Positions 3,488 to 35,447 of a DNA stretch of 64,000 nucleotides are shown piece after piece. Where the stretch lies: sequence record OR529409.1; one strand, written 5' to 3'. Made by a program: the position numbers and the translations under genes. The notes beneath the pieces were generated by a model. The model was not told the DNA's origin, searched no databases, and saw only the letters and a list, made by a program, of their open reading frames with translations. The stretch's first letter is position 1. Each line of letters begins with the position of its first letter.

Positions 3488-5065
3488 GTGAACGTTCGTG
3501 GCGTAAAAGTAAAAGCAGAAACCCGTCAAATTATTGATAACACCGTAGAGCTCGTTGCAACCGCGGTAACCTCGACCATGGGCCCTAACGGCAAGCTGGT
3601 TGTTATTGACGAAACGGGTAATCCTAAAATGACCAAGGATGGGGTGACAGTAGCGCGCTCTATCCGTTTGGATGATCGGGCAATGGACATCATCGCCAAG
3701 ATGATCACCGAAGCCTCGATCAAAACGGATGCCGAATGTGGCGATGGGACCACCACCACTGTATTCTTAACAAGAGCGTTTTATAACGCCTTTAAAGATA
3801 AACTGGATTTCATGACCAAACGCCGGGTGGAAGAGTTAACCAAAGAAACGATCGAAATGCTCAAAGGAATGACGAAGGTTATTTCTCTTGATAGCCCAGT
3901 CCTTCACAATCTGGCGTTAACAACCAGTAATAACGATCTGGATATCGTGGATAAACTCTACGATATCTTTAAGACCATACCTGATCCCATGATTGATTAT
4001 CGTCGGGGTGTAACAGGTATTGACGAGATCGAATACAGTAAGGGTAAGGAATTCACAGGCGGGTACGCACATCCCACTTTCACTAAAGACGGAAGTGGTA
4101 GCCCGATTACGATTGAATCGGGTTATGCGTGCATCTTTGAAGGGAAGTTCAGTATTCCAGATGACGAGTCGGAATTCCTGAAGCTCTTCGATGAGATCAC
4201 TGAAAGGGGATATCGTCAGACTGTTGTTATCGCACGTGAATTCGACGAACACACCCTGATGGTGATGAACAAAATGAATCACGTTATGCTGACGCAGAAA
4301 CTGGTGGAGGAACCGGTTTTCATTCCCGTGCGGGTTCAGGCTATCGGAACAGCGGGAGTGGGGATCATTGGAGATATTGCAACGGTACTGGGATTAAACC
4401 AGGATGTGGACTATTCAGGTTGGAAGTCTCGCAACTATGAAGTACGCCCCATTGAAAACGTTGTAGTGAAAGGCGCGCTATTCTTTGTGGGTAGCGTGTC
4501 CGATGATGTCTCGGAACGTACAGTAAAGCGTATCGCGCAAATTAAAGATCAAATCGATAACTTGCCAGCTGCTCAGAAACACACGCCTTTGGCGAAGATC
4601 CTGAGACACCGTATCTCTACTCTGATGGGTAACCGAGTGACTGTAACCGTTGGAGGAGAAACCGCTTCCGACATCAAAGAACGACTGGATCGATTTGAAG
4701 ACGTCGGTCGGGCTATCGCATCAGCGTTAACTAACGGCGTCCTTCCGGGCATTGGTTATTCATTGGCTTATGTTGGTAGTGAGCTGGTGAAGAAATATCC
4801 TGACGATTCTATAGTGAAACTGTACGCCGATGTATTGGGCGAGCAGCTTCACATGTTGATGGGTCGGGAATTCAATGATCCTGAATTAGTCTATGTCAAT
4901 CTGGCTACTGGGGAAACCGGTAAGCATCCTCAAGACATCAACGTCTGGGATGCGCAGTTAGCCACAGTCACTGCGTTAAGGGCTGGTGTCAGCACTGCTA
5001 TCTCTTTGGCGAGCACCGATACGTTAATTATCGGTAGTCGTGCAGGTGGTGCGGATATTCCCTGA
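3488..5065 (+). CDS. groEL: Phage-encoded GroEL-like chaperonin
   Basis: TMGPNG, KDGVTVA, GDGTTT and GGET..KERLDRFED motifs; 525 aa; GTG start with AGGAG RBS; no GGM tail. Confidence 0.95.
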   Translation: MNVRGVKVKAETRQIIDNTVELVATAVTSTMGPNGKLVVIDETGNPKMTKDGVTVARSIRLDDRAMDIIAKMITEASIKTDAECGDGTTTTVFLTRAFYNAFKDKLDFMTKRRVEELTKETIEMLKGMTKVISLDSPVLHNLALTTSNNDLDIVDKLYDIFKTIPDPMIDYRRGVTGIDEIEYSKGKEFTGGYAHPTFTKDGSGSPITIESGYACIFEGKFSIPDDESEFLKLFDEITERGYRQTVVIAREFDEHTLMVMNKMNHVMLTQKLVEEPVFIPVRVQAIGTAGVGIIGDIATVLGLNQDVDYSGWKSRNYEVRPIENVVVKGALFFVGSVSDDVSERTVKRIAQIKDQIDNLPAAQKHTPLAKILRHRISTLMGNRVTVTVGGETASDIKERLDRFEDVGRAIASALTNGVLPGIGYSLAYVGSELVKKYPDDSIVKLYADVLGEQLHMLMGREFNDPELVYVNLATGETGKHPQDINVWDAQLATVTALRAGVSTAISLASTDTLIIGSRAGGADIP

Positions 5066-5074
5066 TGCGTTTTA

Positions 5075-5092
5075 GGGGAAGGAAACTTCCCC
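5075..5092 (+). terminator. GNRA stem-loop after groEL
   Basis: GGGGAAG-GAAA-CTTCCCC; no U-tract, so it may be a stabilising stem rather than a terminator. Confidence 0.45.
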
Positions 5093-5107
5093 ATTGGGAG
5101 AATTTTT

Positions 5108-5365
5108 ATGGGCGTTAACACTTCGTCAATTAAAAATTCTAATAATAGACAACATAATAATTACAGCGATTCATCCTCCGCTCCGATTCAGTTGGATCGT
5201 TCGGGGGAAATTGTCGACGCCAGAACTAAGCTAACAGTTACTGGTGAAATTCCTCTTCGAAAGTTACCCACTTTCTCAAACCCACCGCAAAGAACAATAA
5301 GAGACGATAAAAAACCTTCATCACTCTGGGGGATGGTTAGAGCTCTGTTCTTTGTATTCATGTGA
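5108..5365 (+). CDS. Small hypothetical protein with a hydrophobic C-terminus
   Basis: GGGAG RBS; polar low-complexity body ending LWGMVRALFFVFM. Confidence 0.6.
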   Translation: MGVNTSSIKNSNNRQHNNYSDSSSAPIQLDRSGEIVDARTKLTVTGEIPLRKLPTFSNPPQRTIRDDKKPSSLWGMVRALFFVFM

Positions 5366-5368
5366 TAC

Positions 5369-5398
5369 TATTCCTCTACCCACGTGGGTAGAGGAATA
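5369..5398. repeat. Perfect 30-bp palindrome / terminator hairpin
   Basis: TATTCCTCTACCCAC|GTGGGTAGAGGAATA with no spacer, followed by T-tracts. Confidence 0.9.
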
Positions 5399-5432
5399 AT
5401 AACGCTTTTTATTTTTTAAGGTTATCTCACTC

Positions 5433-5471
5433 ATGGCTAAAATTTATTTCTATTACTCCTCTATTGTATAG
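5433..5471 (+). pseudogene. tdk: Orphaned 5' stub of thymidine kinase (MAKIYFYYSSIV*)
   Basis: AAGGT RBS; translation matches the Tdk N-terminus (E. coli MAQLYFYYSAMNAGK) and is an imperfect repeat of 6465..6496. Confidence 0.8.
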
Positions 5472-5496
5472 TAGAAACTATTATGGGGAAATAGAA

Positions 5497-6465
5497 ATGT
5501 CGAAAATTAGTGGTTACAAAGAACATCCGGTAATAAAAAACCTTTTCATCCATCCTACGGAAGATAATCACGTCCTGTATGTTAGGAAGAAAAAAGTATC
5601 TCGGATAAAGACCCATGTCGGTAAACGCGGATACGTTATTTTTACTATGTGGTTAAATGGGAAATCCAAGGGTTTTCGCTTCCACAAATTGAAAGCCGAA
5701 ACGTATCTCAAGAAACCCAGTTCAGACCACACCCTAGTCGTAAATCATAAGGACCATGTTAAGATCAATAACGATCTCGATAACCTAGAATGGGGGACTC
5801 AAAAAGAGAATGTCGATCATTCATTAAATATCCGTCAAAAGCTTTGTCCCCTCTATCGGATAATGGATTTGACCACGGGGAGATGGTGTACAGCCGGTAG
5901 TCGTAAAGGGGTGATCGAAATGCTAGCTTGTACCCAACGACAACTCTCTAACCATATTAAAGACCCTCGCTATCCATTGCTATTCAAGTGGGAAGTAACA
6001 AGGGGTTTTACTTGGAATCTTTCAAAAGATGATGTAGGTAAATATAACCCACGAGAGCTTCTTCCTTATGTGGTAGAAAAGAATGGCGTCGTTTTTTACC
6101 TGGCGACATTAGCTGAAGTTGGTGAATTGACAAAGATCACTAAATACAATATTACAGTTGCTTTGAAAAATCAACCAATTCTGCACGCCAAGGGATTCAG
6201 CATTCGGTTTATTAATTCTTATGAAGAGTGGATGAAGACTGTTATTGGGAAGTCCTATATCGATACCATGTTAAATAAAAGTAATAGAAATAAAAAACAG
6301 ATCGAGGTAATAAACACTCTTACGGAGGAGAAAACCACGTTAAACGGAATTATGGAATTAATGGAACTGACTAATTATTCACGACCTACCATCGACAGGG
6401 CAATGAAAAATATGTGTGAAGATGGGTGGGTGACTTTCAAAAATCTAAAGATAAGGTTTATTTAA
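5497..6465 (+). mobile_element. Free-standing HNH homing endonuclease gene
   Basis: HKLKAETY...VVNHKDHVKINNDLDNLEWGTQKENVDH (HNH_3 type) plus C-terminal DNA-binding-like repeats; flanked by duplicated tdk 5' ends. Confidence 0.9.
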
Positions 6466-7052
6466 TGGCTAAGGTATTTTTCAATTACGCTGCGATGAAT
6501 TCTGGGAAGACTACTGGTTTGCTGCAATCAGCCTATAATTACGTTGAAAGAGGAATGTCAGTCTTACTTCTTAAACCTAAACTCGATAATAGAGAAGGAA
6601 CCGATCCACTAATTAAATCAAGAATAGGATTAGAAAGCGAGTGTGTTTTTATTCCTGATGATGGGGATGAATTAGTCGACCTCATTCATAATAACAAAGG
6701 TGTTTCGGCGATATTCATCGACGAGGTTCAGTTCGTTCCAGTGCGGGTGCTTAGTGCCATCATGGTGATGTGTGACACCATGGATATTCCTCTTCTTTGC
6801 TACGGTCTCCGTAACGCTTATGACGGTAAGGGATTCCCGGGATCTGATTTCTTATTACGTCACGCTGATAAACTGGTCGAATGCAAATCAATTTGTTGGT
6901 GCGGTAAAAAGGCCACTCACAACATGATGGTTGTCGATGGGAAAGTGGTAAGGGAAACCACATCAGGGGGAAATATGGTTGTCGGCGGTAATGAACTGTA
7001 TCACGCCGTATGTCGTCAGCATTTCTTCGAAGGTAAATACAAAGACGATTAA
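6465..7052 (+). CDS. tdk: Thymidine kinase
   Basis: AMNSGKT P-loop, IDEVQF, YGLR, Zn cysteines CWCG..AVCRQHF; start overlaps the HNH stop (TAATG). Confidence 0.97.
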   Translation: MAKVFFNYAAMNSGKTTGLLQSAYNYVERGMSVLLLKPKLDNREGTDPLIKSRIGLESECVFIPDDGDELVDLIHNNKGVSAIFIDEVQFVPVRVLSAIMVMCDTMDIPLLCYGLRNAYDGKGFPGSDFLLRHADKLVECKSICWCGKKATHNMMVVDGKVVRETTSGGNMVVGGNELYHAVCRQHFFEGKYKDD

Positions 7053-7069
7053 CTTATATTTATTTTGAG

Positions 7070-7090
7070 GTCTACATTATCATGGTGTAA
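7070..7090 (+). promoter_or_regulatory. Early-type promoter, exact 21-bp copy of 58997..59017
   Basis: GTCTACATTATCATGGTGTAA, followed by the TTTTAGGAGTTAACATCATG leader. Confidence 0.7.
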
Positions 7091-7130
7091 GCATAGTACG
7101 TTTTTATTTTCCTTTTTAGGAGTTAACATC

Positions 7131-7625
7131 ATGATGAGCCAACTTGTAAATATTCTGAGTGAACACAGATCGGCGTTTATTTGGCCTTCCAACATCCTTC
7201 AGTTAGAAGATGAATACTTCTATCTCTCGGTCAAGATTACGGAGAGTGGTGTGGTCAAATGTATCTTCCGGAACAAGCTCACCAAAGACGTCCGTAAGTT
7301 CGACTTCTCTGATAGCATTTTTGATAAGGAGGGGTTATGGGATTATTTCAATGCGATCGGCAAAGAAGTCTACGCTATTGGGATTGACTACGGTAAAGGG
7401 TTCCAGCTGAAAATGTTGTTTGAGCCGATTAAGGCGATGATCACCGATAAGGCACATAAGCCTTATAATGGACATCTTCCAAGAGACGTAAGAACACCGC
7501 TGTTTTCCCCGGTCAATGCTCACAGTATTTATCTCGATGAAAACGGCGAGGTTACTCTCGATGGTTTCGAATGGGCGTCTCGCGGATTGCAATTAAAAAT
7601 CATCGAAGAGCTCTTAATTAACTAA
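7131..7625 (+). CDS. Hypothetical protein
   Basis: ATG 7131 with AGGAG RBS (true start is downstream of the track start). Confidence 0.75.
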   Translation: MMSQLVNILSEHRSAFIWPSNILQLEDEYFYLSVKITESGVVKCIFRNKLTKDVRKFDFSDSIFDKEGLWDYFNAIGKEVYAIGIDYGKGFQLKMLFEPIKAMITDKAHKPYNGHLPRDVRTPLFSPVNAHSIYLDENGEVTLDGFEWASRGLQLKIIEELLIN

Positions 7626-33833: not shown

Positions 33834-35447
33834 ATGCAACCTACTAATATTACGTTATTGAACCCAAACAAAGTGGCTTGGGCTCTCATGAAAGCCGTGA
33901 CGTCAACAGACGTCCATGAGGGGATGACCAACAACCTTCATGAAGATGGTTTATACTCTCCAACAATCTTCGGTCGTGTCGGTACCGACCAACGAGATAA
34001 AACTCAATCTTACATCAATGTTAAGATTCCTGTCTTCAACCCGACTTATTTTAAGGCTTTGATTGGGTTAAAGGGTTTGTATCTCGGAATAATCAAAGGG
34101 ACGGAATACGCCCTTTGGGACGCATCAGAACGCGACTTCATAAAATCAAACCTCCTGGAAGGAGAAACCGGCTACGGTTTCTTTATGCGCCACTTTTACG
34201 ACTTAGAACCTAAGTTAAACGAAAGTTATAAACGCAAACAGCGCGTAGAACTCTTTAATAAATTTAAAGACATCGCGTTGACTAAAAACATCATTGTCCT
34301 GCCGGCCGGCATTCGCGATATCCAGGTTGAACCCAACGGCCAGATCGTGGAACCCGAAATAAATGATTTCTATCGTAAACTGATCTTCCGTAGTCGCAGC
34401 GTGGTTATCCAGGAAGGTGAAGAAGATAACCCGATTTACGATAACATCCGTTGGGCGATTCAAAGCGTGTTCAACGACATCGACGATTATATCTTCCGGC
34501 TGATGGAAGGTAAGCGTGGATTCTTACAGCGCCGAGTCTCAACTCGTGGTGTCGTCGGGGGTACTCGTAACGTTATTACCGCTCGTAAAGTTTCTGTTGC
34601 TGATGCGGATGATGATAATGGGGTTGACGTTAACACCACAGATATCGGGATGTATCAAGCGTTGCTGGGTTTCCAATACGTTGCGCGATATGCGTTACTT
34701 AAAGGTTTCTTAAGCCGCGTATTTACAGTAGGGTCAAGCACGGCTAAGCTTGTCGATCCCAGGACTCTTGAATACCAATACGTTGAAGTTGAGAGCAACA
34801 TTGTTGACAAATGGTTGTCGGCCGATGGACTCACCGCTTTGTTCAACGGATTCGGCACCAGGCACTTGCGTCATAAACCGATCAAAATTAATGGCTATTA
34901 CATGGGCCTGACTTATGATGACGGCAAATACGTCAAGTTACTCGGTGACGTAACCGAACTTCCTCCTGGGTTTGATAAGAAGTTCTGCAAACCATTGACT
35001 TACATGGAACTCTTCTATTTAAGTTGTGTCGAAGAAATAGAAAAGAGAATGCTTCAGGTTACCCGCTATCCGATCACCGGGATGGGTTCTATCTATCCTA
35101 GCCTCATCAAAATCAAAACGACAACTAACGCCGAAAAAAGAATCATCTTAGATGATTACTGGGAAGAAGGTTATCGTTGCACATACTACCCGGTCCGAGA
35201 AACCAAACCGGATTATTTCGACGCCATGAGTGTCGATGGCAGTCGGTTAGGTTTATTGGGTGGGGACTTCGATGGCGACCAACTTAACAGTAACTCCATC
35301 AACGGAGAGGATGCTATTGCTGAAGCTAAAGCTTTAATGGGCAGACGCGATTACTATATCACCGGCACGGGGCAGTTCCTTTACAGTCCAACGGTGGAAC
35401 CTCACGAATTCTTATTCCGAAATCTCAGTAACGGACTCAACCTATGA
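33834..35447 (+). CDS. rpoC: Virion RNA polymerase beta' catalytic subunit (phiKZ gp180-like)
   Basis: EDGLYSPTIFG, RNVIT, VTRYP and the catalytic GGDFDGD motif. Confidence 0.95.
   Translation: MQPTNITLLNPNKVAWALMKAVTSTDVHEGMTNNLHEDGLYSPTIFGRVGTDQRDKTQSYINVKIPVFNPTYFKALIGLKGLYLGIIKGTEYALWDASERDFIKSNLLEGETGYGFFMRHFYDLEPKLNESYKRKQRVELFNKFKDIALTKNIIVLPAGIRDIQVEPNGQIVEPEINDFYRKLIFRSRSVVIQEGEEDNPIYDNIRWAIQSVFNDIDDYIFRLMEGKRGFLQRRVSTRGVVGGTRNVITARKVSVADADDDNGVDVNTTDIGMYQALLGFQYVARYALLKGFLSRVFTVGSSTAKLVDPRTLEYQYVEVESNIVDKWLSADGLTALFNGFGTRHLRHKPIKINGYYMGLTYDDGKYVKLLGDVTELPPGFDKKFCKPLTYMELFYLSCVEEIEKRMLQVTRYPITGMGSIYPSLIKIKTTTNAEKRIILDDYWEEGYRCTYYPVRETKPDYFDAMSVDGSRLGLLGGDFDGDQLNSNSINGEDAIAEAKALMGRRDYYITGTGQFLYSPTVEPHEFLFRNLSNGLNL

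Follow-up and report, generated by a model that had tools for sequence, protein, structure and literature searches.

We have analysed a 64,000-nucleotide (nt) stretch of the phage sequence record OR529409.1, referred to here at its full length as the window, in which the thymidine kinase gene tdk carries close to its 5' end an insert of 1,032 nt that encodes an HNH endonuclease. The insert had been noticed in an earlier note made from the sequence alone, and when we re-read the window all of that note's statements on the sequence itself (the short stub upstream of the insert, the HNH open reading frame (ORF), the coupling of the HNH and tdk genes through TAATG, and the coordinates) were found to be correct. 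The features at the locus are the following:

5373..5417, plus strand: intrinsic terminator of the upstream operon (stem 5373-5394, T-run 5405-5417), annotated as a terminator in phage Miami.
5418..5421, plus strand: native tdk ribosome-binding site AAGG, now serving the stub; Miami annotates the same site for its own tdk.
5433..5471, plus strand: the stub, a 12-codon ORF reading MAKIYFYYSSIV and a stop, made of native tdk codons 1-10 followed by ATT GTA TAG from the cassette.
5463..6494, plus strand: the inserted cassette, 1,032 nt or 344 codons, in phase with tdk; delimited by alignment to phages Miami and YC1, by before/after pairs and by the spacing of a direct repeat.
5469..5474, plus strand: TAG TAG, consecutive in-frame stops closing the stub, the same in 8/8 loci that have the HNH gene together with the left flank.
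5485..5489, plus strand: Shine-Dalgarno-like GGGGA, 7 nt 5' of the HNH start codon, kept in all loci with the HNH gene.
5497..6465, plus strand: putative HNH homing-endonuclease gene, 322 amino acids (aa), I-HmuI-like (ATG 5497, TAA 6463-6465), recognised by Pfam HNH_3 and by similarity to I-HmuI.
6280..6294, minus strand: inverted perfect 15-nt copy of stub codons 4-9 within the HNH ORF (empirical p ~6e-4).
6453..6456, plus strand: AAGG in the 3' end of the HNH gene, 8 nt 5' of the tdk start in use, as read from the sequence.
6465..6494, plus strand: cassette-borne substitute tdk codons 1-10, MAKVFFNYAA, with an ATG that overlaps the HNH stop (TAATG).
6465..7052, plus strand: functional thymidine kinase gene tdk, 195 aa (Pfam TK, E 4.9e-35, residues 3-187).

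HNH-less relatives have a terminator of the same form ahead of tdk, and the AAGG at 5418-5421 has the sequence and the spacing of the site that precedes the uninterrupted tdk of Miami, YC1 and metagenome contigs. The stub runs from the ATG at 5433 to the TAG at 5469-5471, with the next in-frame TAG directly behind it at 5472-5474; its first 29-30 nt match the 5' end of HNH-less alleles, for example that of contig L021 (2 differences, in codons 9-10). The cassette lies between tdk codons 10 and 11, just ahead of the P-loop Met codon, and its ends can be moved by 1-2 nt owing to shared bases. It consists, in this order, of two in-frame stops, a 25-nt leader with the GGGGA, the HNH gene, and the substitute tdk codons 1-10; the heptamer TAAGGTT is common to the native tdk leader and the cassette-borne one. 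Stub and tdk start in use share 23 of 32 nt, the same count as had been made before, and a repeat search lists stub and substitute start as direct repeats, exactly 1032 nt apart. Among ungapped 30-mers in the window, the highest match is 21/30 and was equalled in 12 of 1000 shuffles, while the same test in phage phiKp_32 gave 24/30, equalled in 0 of 200 shuffles; whether such a match could arise by chance is irrelevant here, since there are comparative data from relatives with and without the HNH gene.

Over the 2.6 kb around the site, the window matches Stenotrophomonas phage BUCTxx100 at 100% identity and Klebsiella phage KPN8 at 99.2%; both are jumbo phages of the Miamivirus type, with phage EL, RisingSun and Goslar among their relatives. 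For the comparison we used 9 loci with the HNH gene (HNH+) and 14 without it (HNH-less: Miami, YC1 and 12 metagenome contigs); the 90%-identity cluster of the window's Tdk in a large protein collection has 39 members. Miami and YC1 lack the 1,032 nt, and their uninterrupted tdk, MAKIYFYFSSMNSGKT, lies directly behind the same terminator and ribosome-binding site. The HNH-less tdk genes start with MAKIYF[Y/T][Y/F]SSMN, and neither the stub nor a MAKVFF start was found in any of the 14 HNH-less loci; HNH-less relatives combining MAKVFFNYAA with a stub, an arrangement that the earlier note had named as speaking against its proposal, were looked for in these loci and do not occur there. The uninterrupted allele, on the other hand, exists exactly as it had been foretold: the Tdk allele P0130, one of the 39 cluster members, reads MAKIYFYYSSMNSGKT, is identical to the window's Tdk over residues 11-195, and is located on three HNH-less contigs (L020-L022).

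Pairs of loci that represent the site before and after insertion define the extent of the cassette. HNH+ KPN8 and HNH-less L021 differ on the left at 2 positions in stub codons 9-10 and then not before 770 nt, and on the right they show no difference over 466 nt. For HNH+ VB_ZK_P1 and the HNH-less contigs L036/L037, the left side differs in the junction base only, with the next difference at 282 nt, and the first difference on the right is at +38 (11 in 558 nt). It follows from these pairs that the element is the 1,032-nt cassette itself. Presence and absence of the cassette are polymorphic at one precise site, its boundaries are exact, and all 8 HNH+ loci that contain both ends have the same junctions. 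The earlier placement of the insertion just before the P-loop Met codon, with a replacement 5' end brought along, is thus supported both by the 14 empty loci and by the before/after pairs.

As the two copies of the tdk start are direct repeats that flank the insert exactly, they might be thought to stem from a duplication of ~30 bp of target at insertion, with the copies diverging later. We regard this as very improbable: the copies differ by 17-31%, yet the flanks in the before/after pairs are identical for hundreds of nt, and the four changes clustered in codons 3-5 are common to all lineages. HNH endonucleases are not known to make target-site duplications of this kind, which also counts against it.

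The window is ~100% identical to Miami for 2 kb upstream of the site and 63-90% identical across tdk. A long co-conversion tract brought in together with the HNH gene, as this divergence might suggest, was considered and rejected: the same tdk haplotype exists HNH-less (P0130 on L020-L022), and KPN8 differs from L021 near the site essentially by the cassette alone. Compared with Miami, no other patch in 50 kb is as diverged as positions 6495-7600, which comprise tdk and the next gene and fall to 63% identity per 100 nt. Elsewhere, blastn aligns nothing in Miami's equivalent region (L007 263-984, a LysM-domain gene in its 3' part plus the next ORF) to the window stretch 611-983, which is ~349 nt shorter than its Miami counterpart. 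An HNH-less Tdk is also encoded in a Klebsiella quasipneumoniae assembly, on a contig of 251,651 bp that is apparently a whole phage genome.

The HNH+ loci fall into two cassette lineages. In lineage A (BUCTxx100, KPN8 and contigs L023-L025) the stub ends in TAT TAC TCC TCT and the substitute reads MAKVFFNYAA; in lineage B (phiKp_32, VB_ZK_P1 and L027) the stub ends in ACT TAC TCT TCT and the substitute reads MAKVFFTFSS, and contig L026 has the substitute end MAKVFFTYSS. Substitute codons 3-5 (AAG GTA TTT) are invariant in all HNH+ loci and occur in 0/14 HNH-less ones. Codons 7-10 are mosaic with native alleles, and recombination breakpoints must therefore lie inside the 30-nt repeat. The stub is identical to HNH-less alleles at 28-29/30 nt and the substitute end at 20-25/30 nt; scored against a profile of 75 Tdk N-termini, the stub reaches 31.7 bits and the substitute end 23.2 bits, in line with the view put forward in the earlier note that the stub is nearer to canonical Tdk than the copy in use. 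The same note had described the cassette as supplying a recoded N-terminus. While the replacement of the 5' end stands, its recoding probably does not: MAKLYFNYAA, MAKVYFRYAA and MAQLFFNYAS are natural N-termini in other Tdk lineages, and because such similar N-termini occur in nature, the ten substitute codons look like the natural start of a foreign tdk rather than a deliberate recoding. The shared TAAGGTT hints that a foreign ribosome-binding site came along with it.

The insert measures exactly 344 codons, a T would close the upstream exon and a G closes the insert, and group I introns with HNH ORFs occur in this phage group; an alternative is thus that the insert is itself a self-splicing intron with an HNH ORF, in which case splicing of 5462 to 6495 would join the stub to codon 11 in frame. 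An Rfam search of positions 5000-7400 with permissive filters gave no match to a group I intron or ribozyme at E<=10, while the same search, as a positive control, detects Intron_gpI at 37.5 and 51.9 bits in two inserts of phiKp_32. These are introns in RNA polymerase beta genes (L032 18606-18985 and 22302-23736), the second of which contains an HNH ORF; the window has neither of them, with the empty sites at 35273/35274 and 38589/38591. With the HNH ORF and the tdk-like 30 nt subtracted, just 34 nt of the insert are left, and the tdk-like segment retains ATG, AAGG and a Tdk-like frame in three variants. We therefore see next to no chance of an intron at this site; the searches indicate its absence, as the earlier note had claimed in calling the arrangement intron-less. 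Of other mechanisms considered, an intein is excluded by the in-frame TAG TAG, ribosomal bypass was rejected in view of the in-frame stops and the 1 kb gap, and the cassette ends lack the terminal inverted repeats of a transposon.

The thymidine kinase appears to have been kept working throughout. The tdk gene is intact in 11 loci, and its ratio of nonsynonymous to synonymous polymorphism (pN/pS) is 0.06-0.13 among HNH+ genomes; by this measure, the tdk behind the HNH gene is under purifying selection, and it is conserved, as had been said of it. Synonymous divergence between tdk alleles is 0.2-0.5. From codon 11 onward the window's tdk is the recipient's own allele (identical to P0130). The proposal that the substitute start restores the kinase is borne out by the Pfam TK match, which spans residues 3-187 of a single product, and by this selection. 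The locus does not qualify as a gene in pieces: the stub has only 10 native codons, and a full substitute for them is fused to the rest of tdk. The HNH ORF, intact in 8 loci, has a pN/pS of 0.13 between lineages (66-75 nt differences) and by the same measure is also under purifying selection, which indicates that both genes are being maintained.

The 322-aa HNH protein matches Pfam HNH_3 at 27.7 bits, against a cut-off of 24.8. By sequence, its only significant match of solved structure is I-HmuI (1u3e; E 1e-7), with the HNH motifs aligned, and in a set of 42 homologues the catalytic His84 and Asn96 never vary, while Asn92, Asn105 and His108 are almost as constant. An AlphaFold2 model has predicted local distance difference test (pLDDT) values of 83-94 over residues 35-170 and below 50 for residues 171-280; when searched against the PDB with Foldseek, 1u3e was the sole match at E<=0.001 (2.2e-7, probability 1.0, 149 aligned columns). 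Residues 266-314 gave sub-threshold winged-helix matches only. The wider homologues are limited to the HNH domain, and full-length relatives outside the phage group are at most 29% identical.

Between carriers, the cassette and its surroundings have different histories. Lineage-B HNH genes are 1.3-2.1% diverged, compared with 7.4-8.9% for the right flanks and 5.6-6.8% for the left, that is, the cassettes are 3-6 times less diverged than their flanks; identical sequence extends beyond the lineage-B cassette for 26-104 nt on the right and 60-194 nt on the left. The cassette is found on at least 3 tdk haplotypes, each with a close HNH-less counterpart (0-4 amino-acid differences). That nearly identical cassettes sit on more diverged flanks indicates that the cassette has moved between backgrounds. 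The pattern agrees with published accounts of nuclease genes at the borders of genetic exchange (PMC10448857), and with intronless homing in T4 (PMC2988022).

We suggest, with a probability that we would put at roughly 0.7, that in jumbo phages of the Miamivirus type the tdk coding region was invaded by a free-standing I-HmuI-like HNH homing cassette of 1,032 bp, which has been spreading by homing. Judged from sequence comparisons, the structure of the insertion is well supported, and it is probable that the cassette is an active homing element. Ribosomes starting at the native tdk site would make just the 12-residue stub peptide, and full-length Tdk would be made from the cassette ATG, whose translation is probably coupled to that of the HNH gene; the kinase would stay one polypeptide, without a need for RNA or protein splicing. 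In a mixed infection, the enzyme would nick or cut the native tdk 5' region of HNH-less phages, and repair from the carrier would copy the cassette in, most likely with co-conversion over short tracts. A carrier would lose the enzyme's site, since its native 5' region would be split into halves 1 kb apart: the upstream half would stay in the stub, and the downstream half would belong to the new 5' end, with other sequence ahead of it. That the element destroys its own cleavage site in this way, as the earlier note had it, is something we infer rather than observe. In the founding event, foreign DNA spanning an HNH gene and the adjoining tdk probably became linked to the recipient, through the conserved P-loop codons on its right side and through illegitimate joining on its left.

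One could also read the insert as a passive scar, in which a once-intergenic HNH gene and a neighbouring tdk start were pasted in once by illegitimate recombination, with an enzyme that no longer targets the site or works elsewhere; the presence/absence pattern and the mosaic flanks would then result from ordinary phage recombination and vertical descent. The TAAGGTT and the natural-looking N-terminus do fit an origin beside another tdk, each cassette lineage retains its own stub, and mosaic patches are common across 50 kb. We nonetheless consider such a scar unlikely, given the purifying selection on the HNH gene, the low divergence of the cassettes relative to their flanks with breakpoints only 26-194 nt from their ends, and the fact that tdk, of all places in the 50 kb, is the most diverged patch.

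The following observations do, however, weigh against spread by homing. With genomes mosaic at many places, ordinary recombination could have shuffled a passive insert; with both cassette lineages carrying their own stub, the number of independent insertions cannot be fixed. In lineage B and L026 the substitute end resembles native alleles from codon 6 on, and self-immunity therefore cannot rest on recoded codons 7-10; if it exists, it would have to depend on codons 3-5 or on the replaced upstream context. For the same reason, recognition would need to extend over 16 nt or more on the upstream side of the insertion point, which is plausible for an elongated protein of the I-HmuI type. Finally, neither a donor (a tdk with this 5' end) nor a close relative of the HNH protein was found outside this phage group in a phage collection, in IMG/VR (by protein and by DNA pattern), in an index of 5.8 billion proteins or by an exhaustive HMMER search, and an 18-mer scan of Joint Genome Institute (JGI) metagenomes gave 39 matches, all by chance.

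As to how the cassette is expressed, no sigma-70-like promoter was found within the element. A TATG is indeed present at 5482-5485, where the earlier note had seen a possible element-borne promoter; this tetramer occurs 178 times on this strand in 64 kb, about every 360 nt, and is therefore uninformative. Several T4 endonuclease genes have no promoter of their own (PMC2988022), and the same may hold for the cassette. Positions 5446-5459 of the stub can pair with the HNH Shine-Dalgarno and start codon at 5485-5498 (12/14); a hairpin masking the HNH start had z of -1.6 and -1.1 in lineage A, was weaker in lineage B (z 0.3), and was not significant. The 15-nt inverted copy at 6280-6294 corresponds to 5443-5457, stub codons 4-9, and in lineage B the inverted copy matches at 13/15, the changed columns being those that differ in its stub, without compensation. 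One may speculate that the leftover stub is not inert, that its translation unmasks the HNH start, and that the inverted copy serves as a second pairing or operator site, tying endonuclease expression to the invaded gene; the cassette, self-complementing in that it brings the start of its target gene (ribosome-binding site, ATG and first codons), would be the first phage example of a separate route by which homing endonucleases settle in coding regions, a notion that we hold to be quite doubtful.

The closest analogue to the tdk cassette is found in the mobile-ORF gene hybrids of fungal mitochondria (Allomyces macrogynus atp6; Glomus atp6, atp9, cox2 and nad3), whose nuclease belongs to a different family from that of the HNH cassette. 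In these hybrids, an endonuclease ORF inserts in phase with a foreign gene terminus, the native terminus is displaced and unused, and relatives resemble this displaced terminus more closely than the inserted one (PMC3630166). The tdk cassette is like them in that a terminus is duplicated in phase, the native one is retained, and the inserted one is the more diverged; it is unlike them in that the N-terminus is replaced, together with the start codon and the ribosome-binding site, rather than the C-terminus, and in that it resides in a phage rather than in an organelle. Free-standing endonucleases of the T4 type (SegA-G, MobA-E; HNH or GIY-YIG) are polymorphic and spread by break repair with co-conversion of the flanks, and many of their cassettes are promoter-less, riding on host transcripts (PMC2988022). 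These genes are intergenic, whereas the tdk cassette interrupts a coding sequence and itself provides the piece of the gene that would otherwise be missing. Insertion within a gene, at a place important for its function but without an intron or intein, has been described for mobE in nrdA of phage Aeh1, mobA in T4 gene 39/60 and seg in gene 43 of phage 25 (PMC2988022); split genes of this kind, as in Aeh1 nrdA, depend on both pieces, whose two polypeptides reassemble, while the 10-codon piece of tdk is redundant and the kinase stays one polypeptide. I-HmuI itself (1u3e), an intron-encoded HNH nicking endonuclease of Bacillus phage SPO1, has the catalytic His and Asn in common with the tdk enzyme, but is intron-borne and has 174 aa, whereas the tdk HNH is intron-free and has 322 aa, with an extra, poorly modelled middle part and weak C-terminal winged-helix matches. 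The RNA polymerase beta introns of phiKp_32 come from the same phage genus and likewise interrupt a conserved gene, and the ORF-bearing one belongs to the same HNH superfamily (33% identity over the HNH domain); a ribozyme core is detectable in them and not in the tdk insert. Full-text literature searches, the coverage of which is incomplete, gave no phage report of a terminus-replacing cassette.

Phage phiKp_32 (LC768500.1, L028-L032) has at least 7 ORFs similar to the tdk HNH, near 14.6, 29.1, 68.3, 179.6, 186.3, 191.1 and 222.4 kb, and two genes annotated as TnpB (119897-121033 and 147036-148172). Around six other phiKp_32 ORFs, five of them HNH-similar, we found no gene-end duplication comparable to that at tdk, and one marginal case. 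At phiKp_32 68254-69264 (L029 18254-19264), a free-standing HNH gene lies between copies of a terminator-like 30-mer (22/30; equalled in 0 of 200 shuffles), and the HNH insertion there may have duplicated an intergenic signal.

In the annotation of KPN8 and phiKp_32, tdk is called from a GTG 39 nt upstream, giving 208 aa (L003 2128-2754; L004 2128-2754), and in KPN8 the HNH gene is given an upstream extension (L003 1085-2167); the stub is annotated in 0 of the 6 phage records examined. The cassette would explain the inconsistent starts of tdk and HNH annotated in these genomes. The phage of records OR529409.1 and OP079919.1 is recorded as a Stenotrophomonas phage, and is here 99% identical to Klebsiella phages.

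The accepted view is that a homing endonuclease spares its host gene only by way of an intron, an intein or an intergenic site. The tdk cassette would add a fourth route in phage, in which the endonuclease brings its own copy of the gene's end; this route was previously documented for C-termini in fungal mitochondria, and the tdk case would be its N-terminal mirror image. Cultured carriers (KPN8, BUCTxx100, phiKp_32 and VB_ZK_P1) and non-carriers (Miami and YC1) are available, and for two of the carriers there are HNH-less contigs that match the flanks nearly base for base, which makes cleavage specificity, self-immunity and over-transmission directly testable. The cassette would also mark tdk as a hot spot of recombination and diversity in Klebsiella jumbo phages that are under consideration for therapy.

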